From contig BFEA01000037.1 in assembly GCA_003427395.1 (NCBI GenBank), positions 1,653,821-1,717,820 of the forward strand: a DNA stretch of 64,000 nucleotides, given 5' to 3'. Shown piece by piece: positions 29,236 to 64,000 of this stretch. This DNA comes from Chara braunii (Eukaryota > Plantae > Charophyceae). Each line of letters starts with the position of its first letter. The stretch's first letter is position 1. The notes under the pieces are model-generated. The model searched no databases. It was not told the DNA's origin and saw nothing but the letters and a program-made list of their open reading frames with translations. Made by a program: the position numbers and the translations under genes.

Positions 29236-31912
29236 GCGTCCTTCCTTTTCACTTCCAGTTGATGCCGCTAGTGAATACAGCCTCCCCTGGTTCTCATAAA
29301 AATTAAAGGACCACTCTCCCCTTGCTGGTACTACCAGTTTCCGCTCACGAGTTCCACTGGTCCCTCTGTCAATTACTGATGTCGTTGTCGACGGCCAGCA
29401 CCTCGCTTCCACCTAGTTCATTCTGACGACCTTGAATTTTGGTAACATAACGCCACCAAAATTATCACCGTAGGTGTCAAAATTTTTCGGCAACACTTTC
29501 TCACAGTAGCGGGAAAATAACTTGATGTAAGTTGGTTCCGTCGGGTGCCGCCACGAATAGCCTTGCCGCCTGCTGCTCACTGCCGTAAAAATTTGGCTGC
29601 ACCACCCCACGCGAGTGGGAAATTAGCTTGTCGTAAACCTGGTCCGCCGGTACCGCCGTCAACAGCCTTGCCGCAGCTTACCCGCCGTGGTAAAATTTTG
29701 GCAGCGTTTCCCCACTAAAGCGGGAAAAATGGTTGGGCAAATTTACTAAAATCTGGGTCCCAGGCCCAAATCTCATTGTGTCGAACTGCCGTAGTCCATG
29801 TGGGACCAGCACCAGCTAGAGGGGAAGGGAGCAGAGTGCTCCCTGCCTTGGCTATGGTTGCCCAACTCCTCTCCTCGCGCTCCTCTGCAGAACTCCAGCC
29901 TCCTCCCACGTTGCCTCAGGCAGCACCTCCAACAGCCAGCAATACTCAAGTGTGTTCGTCACACACACACTGGCACCACGAGTGTTTTGTGTGGTAGCTG
30001 GGGGACAACTACCTGTTTTATAGTGGCTGAGGAGGGCTGGACGTCACACCAGCCCCCAGGCGAAATCGCGGCCTCACAGTGAGCCCTTGATCTTATTAAG
30101 ATCCAGGGCTAACTGTGACCGCACCTCAGCCATAGCCTTAGTGAGGGCAGTTCCTTTAACTGCCCTCTTTTTCTTTTTCTTTTCTTTTTCCCAGCTATCT
30201 CGGAATTTCACGAGATAGCCGGGCCTCTGCCATTTCTAAAAATGTGTTTCTTTTATTTTTTTGATAAGGGGTTGGAGAGAGACGACCCCTTACAGTTTGA
30301 TGTATCTGGACCCTTTTTCGAGGGCAAATACATCGGGAAAAAGGTTGTCCTTAGCCTTTTCATGTATGACCCCTCCATTTCCAGGCTCCCTCTAAAATCG
30401 GGAGCCTGACAGTTACCTCTGGCAGCTTCTGCCAAAAGTAGCACCTCGTGAGGACAAGTGTCCTCACGAGAAAGAAGAAAACAACTAAAAGAAAAAAAAA
30501 AAAAAAACTAATCCTAACTATACCGCATCTGGCTCTTACCTCAACCAGGTGCATGCTGTTGCATGCAACAGTCTCCTCCTTACGTTTCTCTGTCCTCCCC
30601 TAAAAACAAGGAGGGCAGTTGGCAGATTGAGAGAGGTAAGGCCTCCTCCTCCCAACCCCCACGTCCTTCTCTCTCTTTCCCTCCAACCAACCCCCACAAT
30701 TTCATTCCCACACGCGCGTCGTGGGCTGCGAGATGCAGGATCTCGCGGCCACGAATATTCCTGGCTTTCTGAGTGGGGAGTTGGTCCTGCTCCCATACAG
30801 CTGAAAAATGTTGTTTCCTCTTCCTTTTGCTCTTACGAGGTTGTTGCCTCGTTCATTTTTTTTTTTTTTTTGCCCTGCTGGCACAGCCAACGAGCAACTT
30901 TGGGGCTACTAAAGGGCAGGCCTGAGTTTGATCCCTGTTGGGGATCGGAAAAAGAAAAAAAAAAATTGGACTTCTTCTCGATTTATGCGTGTCATCCTTG
31001 CGCAAGGGCTATACTAATCTGTGTGCGTGCGGCCAATCTCGGCCATGTGATTTGTAAGATCGTGCGGTCGTGGCCGACCGCGCCTGCAAAAATGCAGCAG
31101 GCCGATCGTTAGGCTCGATCCATGAGTTTGCAAGGTGACAGTTTGATGGCGGTACCTACCGGGCTAGCTCCTTTCACAGGAGCTAAGCTGCAACACTTCT
31201 ATATGAAGTGGTGCAACACCAAGTTGGCCCTGCCTGGCATCCCATAGGCCCAACCCTCCTTACTTGGTTTCTTGGCTGGCCGCCAACATCAACCCCGACG
31301 GTCTCCAGCTTCAAGTAGGGAAGACCGCTAGCCCTATCGGTTGCACCACAGTCCCTGACGAGAGATCTACTCTGCAGCTAATACCTCCTTCGTGCCGTGT
31401 TTCAATCTTCAGCGAGGTCAGTCTTTTCAAGACCTCGTGCTCTTGCGGCCTTGTAAAAAACCATGACCAACAGGTTGTACTCCCGACTCCCGCTGTTTCA
31501 ATCGGACGTGAATAACGTCAGGTTCTAAAAAGTTTAAGTTTCTCAGTCATAGGATTGGTGTGAATAAACTTTGGCAGATACTTCAACCTCATTAAGCCAG
31601 TTCATTTAAACTAAAATTCACCATCGGTCGGACAATTGTCCGACATTAAAAATCCCGAGCAGATACCCTTGTCAGGGTTTTCTACCCCGACCGGGTGTCT
31701 GGTTACACCGTTTACCCTTGTCGTTATGTCTGTCAGCAGGTAGACGGCTGCATAAAATTTTAAACTTTATTCAAATCGCTGACGAGTCGGAATATTTCAG
31801 CAATATTTCTATTTCATCAGACCAAACCTTACAAAACTTACATCAGAATTCGGACCACGTCCGACATTGAAAATATAGGGCAGATACCCTTGTCAGGTTT
31901 TCTGTCCTGACA
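29236..31912 (-). repeat. Truncated 3' LTR of element C
   Basis: Starts TGTCAGGACAGAAAACCTGACAAGGGTATCTGCCC, like A and B. Carries 3 copies of the GCTGCC.AAATTTT core of LTR A's 123-bp repeat (29470-29730) and short anchors shared with B. Confidence 0.7.
30961..31020 (-). ncRNA. U6: U6 snRNA 3'-half fragment (pseudogene) followed by a T tract
   Basis: Minus strand AGATTAGTATAGCCCTTGCGCAAGGATGACACGCATAAATCGAGAAGAAGTCCAATTTTT closely matches the plant U6 3' half. The 5' stem-loop and ACAGAGA box are absent. Confidence 0.92.
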
Positions 31913-44940: not shown

Positions 44941-47763
44941 TTCCACTGGGGTCAGTGATCCATGGATTGCAGAAGAGCGGTTGTCTCAGGACTTCTTCTC
45001 TGTTACCTGGTGCCCCGTGTTTACTCGGCGTCATTTTGCGCCAGGCTTTGATGGTGGGACTCCAATATGTGCTGACTGTTTGAGTGGGGTTTGTGTTGAG
45101 CTGTGCAGTATTGTGCTGTGCGGGGTTTCTCCTGCGTGGTCTGCCGGACTTGATTGTCCAGTCCTTTGCCATGAGCCAAAACAGGCCGTTCATGTTTGGA
45201 GGGGAGTTGATGGGAGCTAAGTTTCTGATGCTGTTTAGCGCCATTTGGGTCCATGAGAGGAACTGTCTGGTGAGAATCTTGATTATCCATTTCATCTGCA
45301 GTGCTATGGATTCCTGTTTTGGGTCGATTATCCCGAGGCCCCCTTCCTGGTGCTTCCTGGTGATGTGGTTCCATGCGACCCTGTTCATGCAAGTGTTCAT
45401 GTTGGGGTCACCTGTCCACAGGTAGCATCTCACCCTGTTTTTAAGCTCCTTGAGGTCGTCGTCGGGGGGGGGACCAGATGGATGCCATATACCACAGTGT
45501 GGAGAAGATTGTTGTATTGACAAGTAGTGCACGTCCGATTAGTGAGGCCTGGGCGTTTTTGCACAGGGCCAGGCGAGTGATTGCTCTAGCTATTAGGTTC
45601 TGGCCCATTCCTGGCCACACCCCTTCCTTATTGATCATAATACCCAGGAACCGTAATGCTTGCTCACTCGTGGTCCAAGTCATGGGTGTGGTTGTGTCCG
45701 GTGGTTGGGGAGGGGTGTCGTCTGCTAACCACCATCCTTCGATTTTGTTCCAATTGACCCTCATTTCTGATGCCAGTCTGAAGGCTTCCATTGCCCTTAC
45801 CAGTGCTTGGAAAGAGCTGTTGTTTGCTCTAACGAGTACCGTAAGGTCGTCCGCGAACATGAGTGCAGTGGGTAGGGCGAAGTCGTGTAACGGATTGAAA
45901 TTCCGTTCTGTGAGGCGGTCAATGAATGGGTCTTTGCGGAGAAAGAAAGCTATGGCTTCCATTATGAAGAGGAATATGGAAGGAGCCAGTGGGTCGCCTT
46001 GTCTGACTGAACGTGAAATTGGATAGGTTTCCGATAGGATTCTATTGATTTGGACTCTTCCTGTTGCGTCTGTGTACATAACTCTCACCCAACTTCTGAA
46101 GTTCGGACCTACCCCCATTTTCTCCATGCATGCATGGAGAAAATCCCAGTTAACTTGGTCGTAGGCTTTCTCGAAATCGAAGAACATGATTGCAGCCTTT
46201 ATTCGTTTTTCTGTGATCTTTCTTGTCGCCTCATTCAGAGTCATCACATTGTCCAATATGTATCGACCTGGGATGAAGCCCGCTTGGTCGATGTGAAAAC
46301 AACTGTTCGTTAGTTTTGTGATTCTGTTTGCAAGAGCCGTGGCGAGGATTTTGTACGGCGTGGCTAGTAGGGAAATAGGTCTGTAGTTTTTCAGGTCTTT
46401 TTTGTCTCCCTTCTTGTACAGCAGTGAGACCACGTTGGTGCTCAGTTCCTTTCCTGGGCCTCCTTTGCGCATGCTTTCGTTGAAGAAGTCGAGTAGGTCC
46501 TCTCCCAGGGTCGGCCGGAAGCAGCTCCAAAATTCCTTGGAGAGGCCATCGATGCCCGGGGCTTTGTCATTATCCATCTGGTTCAGGGCTATGCGTCGTT
46601 CGGCCAGGGTCAGTGCTTTATCCAGGCCTTCCGCCTGACTGGTCGAGATGGTTCTGTCGAGGTATGAGAGCATCAGTTGGCGGGCTGCTCGGTTCGCTGT
46701 TGTCGGGGGTGAGGGAGTCTTGGATTCGTATAGATTTGCGTAGAAGGATCTGGCTATCCCTACCATCTCAGGGCCTGTTGTTTTTGTGCTCCCTGCAACT
46801 GATGGGTCTTTGAGGACCTCTATCATATTGTTCCTTGCGTTCGACTTGATTTTGGAAAAAAAGAATTTTGTTATAGACTCGTTAACTGCATAGTCTGTCA
46901 TCCTTGCTCGTATTTGTAGACCTCTGAGTTCCCATCTTCCCCATTTGTTTAGTTCTTCTTTAGTGTCGTCTAGTAGTTCTTGGTAGAATCCACTGGTTGG
47001 ATCCACCGCTAGATTTGTTTCTGCAATAGCCATAGTGAACTGGAGTTCTTCCCTTCTTCTTTTGCGGTCTCTTGCAATATCTCTTGATTTCGCTGAGACT
47101 ATCCGTGTTAATTTTGTGTAGCTGTCAATGAACCATTGGTGGCTGTTTGTCTTCTTTGATTCACGCTGCTTATTGAGGGCCCAGTTTTCTTGGACTGTCG
47201 CCGTCATTCTTTCTGTTTTAACAAGGAGTTGTTCAGCTTAAAAAACCCTGGCCTATTTGAATTGGTACATTGAAGTTGAGCAGCATTTTGATAGGTTTGT
47301 GGTCCAGTCCTTCGAAGGTTGCTGATGGGAGGATTTCGGCCTCTTTGACTGTTCTGAGTAGGCTCTCGGATATGAGGAAGTAGTCAATCTTGGACAGTGA
47401 AGTCCGGTTGGCTTGGTTCCTCCTTATTCGGGAGAAAACTTTCTTATCCGGATGCAGTGCCCTGAGGGGGTCGCAGAGTTCGAATTCAGTCATCAAGTTC
47501 CGAATCCGGGTGCCCGCTCTTGTGGGTCTCATTAGTGCTGTTCTTGAGATCCGATCCAGGTTTGGGTCCAGGGTCGTGTTCCAGTCCCCTGCGATGATTA
47601 TTGGTTGTGGGTTGGGGATGAGGGATTTGATGTTTTCAAAGAAAGTCAGTCAGTCGGATTTCGTGTTTGGTGCGTAAAGGTTGAGAATTTGCAGATCCTC
47701 TCCTTGCCATTTGATGTCCAACCACGACCATCTCCCTTCCTCACACGCCAGCCCTTTGCAAGT

Positions 47764-48068
47764 GCGTCGTAGCGTATAAGTTTCTACGGAAACTGATAAG
47801 ATTTCATATGGCTCAACGTAGGGAGAAAGCGAAGCAGGAGGCGGCGTGTGGAGCAGCGTCTTCAAAACAAGAGCGGCGCGAGTGAGAAGCGTGGACCGCG
47901 CGATAGCGACCAGTGAAATATCTGGCGATTCCCTCCGCGGGTTGAAGCTCACACTGCCCATTGGCGGTGCTCGAGTTCTGCGAGTTGGTGCGATCTTCTG
48001 TGACGTTTGCGGTGCGTGTCTGGCCACTGATGAGTCCGACGGGACGAAACACGCGATAAACCCTCGCT
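47764..48068 (+). mobile_element. ~305-bp non-coding hammerhead-bearing insertion in the LINE endonuclease
   Basis: Removing it (with one copy of the flanking GT) restores ...IPKTSKTCKGLACEEGRW... in frame. Confidence 0.8.
48014..48054 (+). ncRNA. Minimal hammerhead ribozyme (type III topology, palindromic stem I)
   Basis: GCGTGTC^TGGCCA CTGATGA GTCC-GACG-GGAC GAAA CACGC: complete core, perfect stems II and III, GUC cleavage triplet. Confidence 0.88.
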
Positions 48069-48799
48069 GTTTTTGACGTTTTTGGGATCAGTATCGTCGT
48101 CCCTCTATTGCTTTGACCGTCTTTGTTGGACCACAGGGCGACTGTGCATCCTCCTACAGATCTCTCCATCCTCTACTGTATCTTCGGGTGACTACTCAAA
48201 TTGGATAGACGAGTCTCTTGGAGGAGTATGAGGTCGGGTTTGGGGATATCCTTCCCCACCAGACCTGTCCGGATATCTCTAAGCTTGTCTTCATCGGTCA
48301 GAATGTTCCCAAGGCCGTTGACGTTCCAACTAATTATCTGGAGCCCTTTAGCGTGCCAGTTTATCCTGGGTGGGCTGACCTGCCCTGTGAAAAGGGTGAT
48401 TTAATTCTGAAGTATTTCAAAAAGATTTTGTGGAACTAACGAATTATTTGGGACGTATTTTCGAAAATAGCACAAACGTAATTTCAAAAAGAAATATTTC
48501 TAAAAAGAAAAAGAAAAAATTCGATCGTGAAATTTCAAAAAAGGGAAGCTTTAAATTGTAAAGAATTTTCAGAGAGGAAGTATTTCAAGAATATTTGAAA
48601 AATTAACTACTTATTTCCAACGTATTTCAAAAAGAAATTTCGAAAAGGGACTAATCGTTTTTAAAGGTAGATTGATACAAAAGTATTTTGAAAGGAGATA
48701 GATTAGCTAGATGATAGGGCTTGGATAACTAACGGGGCGCAGCGGGGGGCGCGAATACGTGCGGAGGGAGGAAAGGGGGACTCGGGTGGGAAGCAGGAT

Positions 48800-48836
48800 T
48801 GTCTCTTATACACATCTAGATGTGTATAAGAGACAG
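48800..48836. other. Nextera mate-pair junction adapter (assembly artefact)
   Basis: TGTCTCTTATACACATCT-AGATGTGTATAAGAGACAG, back-to-back Tn5 mosaic ends. Confidence 0.97.
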
Positions 48837-57516: not shown

Positions 57517-57764
57517 GTGGTCTGTTTGTTGGTGAGCTATGCGAGCAAGTCCCCCTGTCGGTTGAGATTTTGAGGTCTGTAACCATACCTGCAGCACAGA
57601 GCAATTATTGCCAATTGTGTTTGCCAGCGACTCTCCTTCAGTTGAGATTTTGAGATCAACCCTTGCGAAGATGTATTCGAAGATTTTGTTGCACAAATGC
57701 TGCAGTAAGTCCATGGACTGTTTCAAGGCTGTCTCTTATACACATCTAGATGTGTATAAGAGAC

Positions 57765-57766
<2 letters not shown>
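57517..57766. other. Misplaced mate-pair read plus junction adapter (artefact)
   Basis: 57517-57728 duplicates 63609-63820, starts at a single N and ends at the full adapter 57729-57766. Confidence 0.95.
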
Positions 57767-61778: not shown

Positions 61779-64000
61779 GCGCAGCACCTCAATTTCTTCG
61801 TCCTTGCAATTCTCTAAGGCAGGCAGTGGTGCACATCACAATGCCATTATCAGTGCCATAACTAAACATGCTGTGCGATAGCCACTTGAAGAGGAAGCAG
61901 AGCACACACCGCAGGTGGCAGGAGGATTTCAGCTATGAATTTTCAGGGCATTCCTATCACGCATATCAAAAGTCTGTCAAAAGTATTGTCGAGAAAGCCT
62001 GAGCTTTGTGGGCAACTAACGTACTGACAGGACGACTGCTTCGCAATGTGCACACCATGAGAAGAGCAACAGAGAGCCTCCACAGGATAGTGTGACCTTG
62101 GACATCTCCCATCGTTGCCGTACCGACATGACTAAGCATACCAGGTGCACACTCCCTCACAAAACTGATGTGTTGTACCGAAACTGTTTTCCTTCACCTA
62201 ACAAAGGAAAAACCTCGACTCTACATGTGGTTTCACAGGTCTGGCTCCGACCTCAACTGGCAGATGCAGATCTCAACACTGCTGCTCTCCTCAAATACGA
62301 AGTGTTAAATTGTTAGTACCCTTTAACCTAGGATCTACCATTTGCTCGCTCCAGGTTGCTTTCGAGGACTCCTCTGTGCAATCACCATGAAATGGAAATG
62401 TGCAGGCAAGCACTACTGCACTGCTATTCCTGATTTGACTGAAACGGGTGCATGATTGTTGTGGGAGAGGTGGTCAGAAGGACAATATTGCTAGAATGTA
62501 CACTAACAACAATCCCAAACATTTCTCCAATGCTTCTTCATCCCTGTCTGAGATTGCACGCTGCAACTATTTCCCTCTAGTGGTGCTTGACACGAACTAA
62601 GCAGACATACACTAACAGCATCCCACACATTTTCTAACAGCTGGTTTCTCTTTGAAACTGCATACCAACTAATTCCCTCACAGGACATTGAACCATGATT
62701 AGGGCATTGACTATATCATGTCCCTCTGTGCATGTCAACGCTGGTGACATGATCAGTGCTTTGCTTTGCGTTGTTAGTGGTAGACACAACATGTTCACCC
62801 TCCTCCGTTGCAGTCATCCTCAATGGTTCTCTCGATGTGGCAACAAGTCACATGAGCTTCACAGATTAGGTGCACGTACGGTCCTTGCTGTGACATGAAT
62901 GAAACAACCTCGAGCTCGTATCAAACGGTTACGACCATCCTCCTGCACTGGCCTACCAATCAGAAAATGCTACCCTTAACATTAGTAGTATACAAACATT
63001 CCCCCTTAGAAAAAAATAGGAGAACCTTGAGAAGGGAGAATTTCCTTCTGGTGTCACCCATCCTCCCATGGAATGATGACACAATGGCATTTTTACTGAC
63101 ATTAACCCTGTTTTGCCTTACGCATTGCCTCAGTGACAGAAATCATCACCGCCCTCCTTTAGCAGGCCAACGACAAATCCATGGCAAACAGAATTCACAA
63201 TCAACCCAGGTCAGCATTTCTCATTGATTGCTGCTTTCAGTGAAGGAGTAGAGCATGCCTTGCACTAGTCTGTAAGCTCTATGGAGCCTCTGCACTACTT
63301 GGAACTCGTCACACCTGATCCAGCACAAAAGCTAAATTAGGACATGAGGTTTAGTTCTCTGATTGCCTAACAGTAATGGGGAGACGAACGTGAAGACGAA
63401 CGTAAGCGACCTTGGTAACGAGTTGAGCAGATTGACTTTGCCATCAGAACAGCAATTCATTGACAGGCCGCCGTGCTCACTTGTCTATCACCCGAATGAG
63501 TTCAGCAGCTCGCTGATCTTTACCACGATCACTCTCGACCCAGGAAGGCAGTAAGGAATGAGGATGGAAGGTCATCAATGTGATGACATCTTGTTTGTCC
63601 CCAGTTATGTGGTCTGTTTGTTGGTGAGCTATGCGAGCAAGTCCCCCTGTCGGTTGAGATTTTGAGGTCTGTAACCATACCTGCAGCACAGAGCAATTAT
63701 TGCCAATTGTGTTTGCCAGCGACTCTCCTTCAGTTGAGATTTTGAGATCAACCCTTGCGAAGATGTATTCGAAGATTTTGTTGCACAAATGCTGCAGTAA
63801 GTCCATGGACTGTTTCAAGGATCATTATCGTGAGCGCTGCAGGCAAGAAGTTGAAGCAGCAGAGGAACGCACAGATATGCTCATAGGCTATCAGATTGGA
63901 GGTCACACCCTTGCCCATGTGCTCTCCACATCCACTCCCAGTACTTGTTTAGCATGTGATCATCCGGTCGCACATCTTTCCACCTCCCTTCACAGAACAT

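Follow-up and report, generated by a model that had tools for sequence, protein, structure and literature searches.

A short non-coding insert in a decayed retrotransposon of the charophyte Chara braunii carries a hammerhead ribozyme core with no loop on its first stem, and this raises two questions: how could such a ribozyme act, and to what kind of element does it belong? We examined the insert in its window, the whole stretch of 64,000 nucleotides that was analysed, together with contigs assembled from sequencing reads and metagenomes. A first-pass annotation had suggested a hammerhead that dimerises through stem I, in a retrozyme-like family of circular or tandem RNAs or else in the terminal repeat of a Penelope-type element. 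We consider it probable that a non-coding unit of ~407 nt, resembling the non-LTR retrozymes, left the insert as a truncated genomic copy, and that tandem copies of this unit are cut as a reciprocal double hammerhead while the monomer circles are spared. This reading builds on the observed motif, boundaries, closed unit, other copies and palindrome covariation, and on a computed fold; from these we infer cleavage, ligation, circularity and a mobilising enzyme.

The insert and its hammerhead motif

The insert sits in an L1-type LINE that runs on the minus strand and has decayed, and the locus is organised as follows.

45441 to 47207, minus strand: reverse transcriptase ORF of the host LINE, 588 aa (PF00078, E 8e-34)
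47200 to 47745, minus strand: C-terminal part of the host LINE endonuclease, decayed (stop codons)
~47746 to 48060, plus strand: inserted non-coding element of 315 bp, a partial (~77%) copy of the closed ~407-nt unit, delimited by family contigs from reads
48061 to 48350, minus strand: N-terminal part of the host LINE endonuclease (APE), decayed (stop codon)

Endonuclease motifs in the flanks bear out the initial description of an insert that interrupts an L1-type endonuclease and has neither TIR nor poly-A. The coordinates first given to it, 47764-48068, have to be replaced: family contigs of three runs (one DNA, two probable RNA) begin to align at 47745 and end at 48060. The same contigs rule out 47746-47763 as LINE coding sequence. 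A GT repeat reported at the flanks turns out to be a product of the misplaced ends, and the empty site in a sister copy of the LINE shows no duplication. That copy crosses the site with ~4 bases that are absent here; hence there is no target-site duplication (TSD), and comparison of the two sequences indicates that a small target deletion probably occurred at the insertion site. A CCTC repeat near the insert ends was rejected as a TSD, the same repeat being present in the empty site.

Searches of the 315-bp insert found no TSD, TIR or poly-A and no tRNA-Met PBS; they also gave neither a tRNA nor a promoter-like site, and no match to an A/B box pattern. A protein search returned no homolog of its longest frame, and blastn returned no plasmid match to the element. 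Between 48061 and 48085 the host LINE is apparently short of ~7 more bases relative to one sister copy, with the endonuclease frame shifted; this loss may derive from the insertion or from independent decay. Elsewhere in the window, Nextera mosaic-end adapters, back to back, were left in the assembly at 48800-48836 and 57729-57766, and an exact 212-bp duplication (57517-57728 and 63609-63820) ends beside the second adapter pair; these are likely to be assembly artefacts. The first adapter site is 740 bp from the element, the ends of which are backed by the family contigs. The window also contains the 3' part of a U6 snRNA (30960-31021, minus strand; Rfam, 48.6 bits).

The hammerhead and the parts of the insert that bear on its folding are these.

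47844 to 47849, plus strand: a second GCGUGU, which takes the 3' arm of stem III in the predicted monomer fold
48013 to 48055, plus strand: type III hammerhead motif without loop 1 (Rfam RF00008, 43.7 bits, E 4.3e-8)
48013 to 48019, plus strand: 5' (substrate) arm of stem III
48020, plus strand: C17, with cleavage predicted directly 3' of it from the hammerhead consensus
48021 to 48026, plus strand: palindrome UGGCCA (TGGCCA in DNA), supplying both strands of stem I
48027 to 48033, plus strand: CUGAUGA core box
48034 to 48045, plus strand: stem II, 4 bp, with a GACG loop (pair probability 0.72)
48046 to 48055, plus strand: GAAA box (48046-48049) and 3' arm of stem III

The hammerhead core and helices are thus present where the first-pass annotation had placed them. 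With both helices required, the complete motif has a single match in the window and none in 60 shuffles; the bare core pattern alone may arise by chance, being present in 25 of 100 shuffles. No second copy of the motif was found within the 64,000 nt. The GUC triplet occupies 48018-48020 on the plus strand. Stem II has the 4 bp first described, and stem III proves to have 7 bp instead of six, formed by pairing of 48013-48019 with 48049-48055, and is not palindromic. The motif has the RF00008 core CUGANGA, the GAAA and NUH elements, and helices II and III with helix III open. Helix I departs from RF00008, where it is closed by a loop 1 that contacts loop 2; in the RF00008 alignment of our motif, loop 1 has length zero. 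Since the score of 43.7 bits falls below the RF00008 gathering cut-off of 48.5, a default Rfam scan misses the motif.

The closed unit and further families

Reads extend the element beyond the limits of the insert. In the DNA run and the probable RNA runs, the sequence past 48060 continues through 92 nt that are not part of the insert and then returns to 47745. The contigs of this unit measure 437 nt (441 nt in the DNA run), and with a 31-mer overlap the 437-nt contigs point to a closed unit of ~407 nt. It was recovered from a DNA run and from two runs that are probably RNA, under two organism labels. Two further contigs of one of the probable RNA runs (X8), of 373 and 359 nt, match the window only in the ribozyme plus ~20 nt upstream of it, that is, in a single segment.

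47991 to 48055, plus strand: gap-free segment common to the two further X8 contigs (limits 47991/6 and 48054/5), the flanks being different

A common segment with differing flanks suggests that there are further unit families with the same loop-less motif. Other copies, the absence of which would have counted against the original proposal, thus exist in the reads both as unit contigs and as further families.

In X8, a run whose RNA label is a guess, the contig depth, itself a poor measure, lies at ~400 over the element and at 0-9 over the flanking LINE sequence, against 64-92 on the element and 30-290 on the flanks in the DNA run, and this contrast suggests an abundant RNA. The X8 unit contig has 12 differences from the window, from 47817 to 48005, and none in the hammerhead. 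Run X12, which bears the second organism label, gave a result identical to the X8 unit contig, and the variant of these two probable RNA runs differs from the main contig of the DNA run at at least 8 positions. Closed 437-nt contigs are enriched in a probable RNA run; contigs cannot tell circles, and as the closed unit is found in DNA too, the RNA cycles may reflect tandem arrays instead of circles. An oligo-dT raw-read run yielded 4 reads, none of them across the body of the element, which fits an RNA that is non-polyadenylated or unexpressed; at this near-zero depth, no piled-up ends were seen.

These data bear on the alternative that the same double-hammerhead chemistry serves a viroid-like circle which replicates by RNA-to-RNA copying and, as a retroviroid would, enters the genome just now and then. 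The same design does occur in free circles, one of them symmetric, as described below, and plant retrozymes have been reported in both polarities (PMC5680766). The variant of the probable RNA runs, seen under two organism labels and at least 8 positions away from the main contig of the DNA run, could be taken as a sign of such a life cycle; however, strain differences or a few active loci would explain it equally. Moreover, the closed unit is itself present in the DNA run, at a depth of 64; no second ribozyme was found on the minus strand within 315 of the ~407 nt; and the structure of the insert is no greater than that of shuffles (z +0.9 to +1.6). We therefore regard a primarily RNA-based circle as unlikely, and prefer a genomic, retrozyme-like unit.

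The closure of the unit also affects the possibility that the insert represents a 3' pseudo-LTR, truncated at its 5' end, from an autonomous element of the Penelope-like (Chlamys) kind. Hammerhead-bearing Chlamys subclades have been reported in Chara braunii (PMC8557442), and the position of the hammerhead close to the 3' end, the truncated 5' end and the lack of a TSD would all suit such an origin. Yet a unit that closes at ~407 nt leaves no room for an ORF, the longest frame has no protein homolog, and Penelope hammerheads are mostly of type I, those of the Chara clades being termed canonical. The first-pass annotation had proposed a search for tandem ~300-bp units or for adjacent GIY-YIG or reverse transcriptase frames. 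A closed unit was indeed recovered, but with a length of ~407 nt, and no GIY-YIG domain was detected among the tested long ORFs of the window. With the unit closing on itself and both flanks belonging to the LINE, the suggestion of a Penelope-type terminal repeat finds no support, and we hold this origin to be very unlikely. A self-closing non-coding unit remains the preferred description.

Palindrome conservation and the predicted two-copy fold

Metagenome contigs were scanned with a form of the motif that allowed any letters at the six linker positions, a match being counted as complete if it had a stem II of at least 4 bp and a stem III of at least 5 bp. The scan gave 51 distinct matches, 4 structurally complete and 47 not, and the linker is a perfect palindrome in 4/4 of the former and 0/47 of the latter (Fisher p ~4e-6). 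A looser cut-off for stem II, which admits two non-palindromic motifs, gives a p of 6e-5, and counting families gives 3e-4. The palindromes of the complete matches are CGAUCG (L119), ACCGGU (L140 and L150) and UGGCCA (L145); the independent palindromes found are three only. Two capsid relatives recovered by protein homology alone, L273 and L274, likewise have an ACCGGU linker, combined with different stems II and III. In an alignment of the seven motifs, all three linker pairs are 100% paired, each with two-sided changes. As stems II and III helped to pick four of these sequences, only the linker result constitutes an independent test. All seven scored examples lie below the Rfam cut-off (31-44 bits vs 48.5), and standard annotation consequently misses the design. 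Viral collections yielded no complete motif, only type I-like motifs with a chance GUC and chance 16-mers; bacterial genomes, which served as a negative control, yielded none among the matches listed, all of which are chance.

The metagenome examples lie on contigs of several kinds. The source of L119, L140 and L150 is the Yangshan RNA virome (PMC7508674). Terminal repeats identify L140 (1074 nt) and L145 (1113 nt) as circles, and L273 is a circle of 1131 nt. L140 and L150 encode circovirus-capsid-like proteins. L145 has no ORF of at least 90 aa; it carries a twister-P1 on one strand and the loop-less hammerhead on the other (sites 65-124, plus, and 388-433, minus), and a stretch of 20 nt in it is identical to part of the window motif. 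In this contig the loop-less motif fills the ribozyme slot of a symmetric rolling-circle RNA. The circovirus-capsid-like proteins form a family of ~200-aa members (P0001-P0024) encoded on ~1 kb contigs, four of which (L140, L150, L273 and L274) have the motif. Nine other capsid relatives, on linear and probably incomplete contigs, showed no hammerhead and no Rfam ribozyme.

We also observed three related contigs with hammerhead cores on both strands (L099, 2602-2930; L144, 2150-2470; L149, 455-812). They have a long ORF (in L099 of 727 aa, with a GDD motif and no Pfam hit), 6-nt linkers of the G(UUCG)Y type and a self-complementary stem II region. They may be circles resembling ambiviruses, in which the hammerhead follows a further minimal or dimeric design.

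Could the palindrome simply be the scar of a dead canonical type III hammerhead, in which loop 1 was deleted and the two halves of stem I were left as an accidental palindrome? The Rfam consensus UGG-loop-CCA without its loop does read UGGCCA, and loop loss may be how the design originated. As an account of the present element it is the least probable that we considered: no contig in any run has an insertion in the linker, the motif is kept while its flanks diverge, and exactly six palindromic letters, in three sequences, recur in unrelated replicons.

In a hammerhead, the base after C17 pairs with the base before CUGAUGA, which lies on the strand that gives GAAA to stem III. If the palindrome forms its helix between two molecules, it follows from this rule that both stems III must be exchanged as well. 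The dimer proposed initially, with its shared 6-bp stem I, was incomplete: an active core would also require stem III to swap between the copies. Pairing of UGGCCA with its counterpart in another copy is predicted to give a helix of 6 bp (duplex energy -9.1 kcal/mol), and 6 bp is the usual length of helix I in type III hammerheads (PMC7936874). Two copies of the window motif cofold into the full double hammerhead at -37.9 kcal/mol, vs 2 x -12.9 kcal/mol separately. This structure is the cofold MFE in 4/7 motifs (the window motif, L140, L145 and L150); the minima of L119, L273 and L274 are partly different, and for two a non-palindromic control dimerised equally or better. In head-to-tail concatemers of a unit plus one, L145 has the double hammerhead as its MFE, and for L140 and L273 this structure lies within 0.8 kcal/mol of the minimum. 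In a tandem model of the window element, with the 92 nt entered as N, it is again the MFE, with pair probabilities of 0.77-1.0, and non-palindromic linkers lower the probability of the swapped stem III from 0.81-0.84 to 0.03-0.68. In the fold of a single insert stem III has a probability of 0.01, and the modelled pairing of GCGUGU at 47844-47849 is a possible off state.

The contention that a monomer cannot close stem I stands, the six letters having no room for a 3-bp hairpin. The competing idea is that a monomer acts in cis, perhaps slowly or chaperoned, through a 1-bp stem I (U-A) capped by a GGCC tetraloop. Very short helices are known to be tolerated: slow cleavage persists in hammerheads whose helix II is reduced to 1 bp or missing (PMC13725137), and axolotl monomers with a 1-bp helix III are cleaved to ~6% in an hour (PMC7229834). 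The type III-like motifs of the ambisense L099, L144 and L149, with their non-palindromic 6-nt G(UUCG)Y linker, also speak for such a fold. In our element, however, forcing the U-A pair costs +4.3 kcal/mol and its probability in the circle model is ~0, and a tetraloop leaves unexplained why the inner four letters are self-complementary in three unrelated sequences. Cis activity of the monomer is accordingly improbable in our view, and the two-copy fold is the preferred one. In that fold loop 1 is lacking and with it the usual loop 1-loop 2 contact, so that cleavage rates may be low, as is likewise the case for Penelope dimers (PMC4209133).

The proposed cycle and its relation to known systems

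On the preferred reading, the palindromes of neighbouring units in a head-to-tail transcript would form one shared 6-bp stem I, and the GUC arm of each copy would pair with the GAAA arm of the other to give the swapped stems III. Both sites would then be cut, releasing a unit-length RNA that a host ligase would close; ligation by host enzymes has been proposed for retrozymes (PMC7229834). The monomer circle, being without a partner, would be inert and spared from self-cleavage, a logic of cutting multimers and sparing circles that was proposed earlier for stem III dimers (PMC4209133). Partial genomic copies that include the cleavage site would arise when uncleaved circles or concatemers are copied by a reverse transcriptase acting in trans. 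The insert, which starts 275 nt upstream of the predicted site and ends 40 nt downstream, does span it, and so its template would have been an uncleaved circle or a concatemer. Our best guess for the source of the enzyme is a Penelope-like element, families of which exist in Chara braunii (PMC8557442), and a LINE is a possible one; as in Penelope-type insertions, the 3' end lies just past the ribozyme, the 5' end is truncated and there is no TSD. The initial claim of a stem-I dimeric hammerhead in a retrozyme-like family of circular or tandem RNAs is, as far as comparative sequence and modelling can carry it, well supported by the covarying palindromes, the copies, the closed unit and the folding.

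The cycle has close parallels in the double hammerheads of avocado sunblotch viroid, newt and axolotl satellites and Penelope-like elements, in which a palindromic helix too short to stand alone is likewise formed between tandem copies, an arrangement proposed to let multimers be cleaved and monomer circles be spared (PMC4209133, PMC6765202, PMC3088659). Here too the copies lie head to tail (the unit joint leads from 48060 to 47745) and modelling makes a two-core fold possible. In contrast, the known examples are of type I and share stem III, whereas the present motif is of type III and shares stem I, with a long swapped stem III and no loop 1. The element would work like the known double hammerheads and yet falls outside their structural class, which is defined by stem III as the shared helix. 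Within the literature searched, every natural double hammerhead described shares stem III, and no hammerhead with a stem-I palindrome was found in the open papers.

Among mobile elements, the plant LTR retrozymes (Cervera et al. 2016) are similar in being non-coding, of the plant lineage and of type III, with a unit-length RNA predicted between two ribozymes. The element is not one of them: they have a 4-bp TSD, an LTR pair and a tRNA-Met PBS, none of which is found in the 315 nt of the insert or at its ends, and consist of two 300-400-bp LTRs, a unique core and a PPT, whereas the element is a single partial unit. Their unit is 600-1000 nt vs ~407 nt here, and stem I of their hammerheads, 6 bp long, is closed by a loop of 6-8 nt. 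The closest layout is that of the metazoan non-LTR retrozymes (Cervera and de la Pena 2020, PMC7229834), which are short (170-400 nt) tandem non-coding units with one hammerhead each, are expressed, and have no LTR, PBS or PPT, the amphibian ones needing dimers. These are animal elements with type I hammerheads and a GC content <50%, unlike the unit described here, whose motif is of type III and would dimerise through stem I.

Among free RNAs, the capsid-encoding and non-coding viroid-like circles that Lee et al. (bioRxiv 10.1101/2022.07.19.500677) describe from metatranscriptomes form classes that accommodate L140, L150, L273 and L274 (~1.0-1.4 kb, circovirus-capsid-like ORF, HHR3), and also L145 (HHR3 plus twister). 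In the passages used here, no palindromic stem I or dimer mechanism is described for the HHR3 motifs, and the RNAs are not known as genomic inserts. The present account adds palindrome covariation across unrelated circular RNAs, revised boundaries of the insert, a unit of ~407 nt and a model with swapped stems III.

More broadly, we propose a widespread and so far undescribed hammerhead architecture, a symmetric two-core enzyme in which the core of the partner replaces loop 1. Genomic retrozymes of a charophyte, capsid-encoding satellite-like circles and viroid-like circles of the symmetric kind would employ it as a built-in sensor, so that concatemers are cut while monomer circles stay intact; the chances for and against this generalisation appear to us evenly balanced. 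If it is true, it provides a direct structural link from genomic retrozymes to free viroid-like RNAs. The stem-I version would mean that the logic of cutting multimers and sparing circles arose in a second topology; the design is present in three or more kinds of replicon. Two questions become testable: whether the contact of loop 1 with loop 2 can be taken over by the core of a partner, and whether ribozymes have passed between retrozymes and viroid-like circles. A 43-nt ribozyme dependent on copy number could also serve in the production of circular RNA.

Natural rearrangements of the hammerhead core are also exemplified by the non-circularly permuted hammerheads (Eckert et al. 2023, PMC10085705); those are pseudoknotted permutations within a single molecule, described without mention of palindromes, whereas the motif described here retains the order of type III and would require a second copy. 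A recurrent phage hammerhead family, seen in L005, L020, L040 and similar viral contigs, has its GUC six letters before the core and no matching stem III, and its design differs from that of the loop-less motif.
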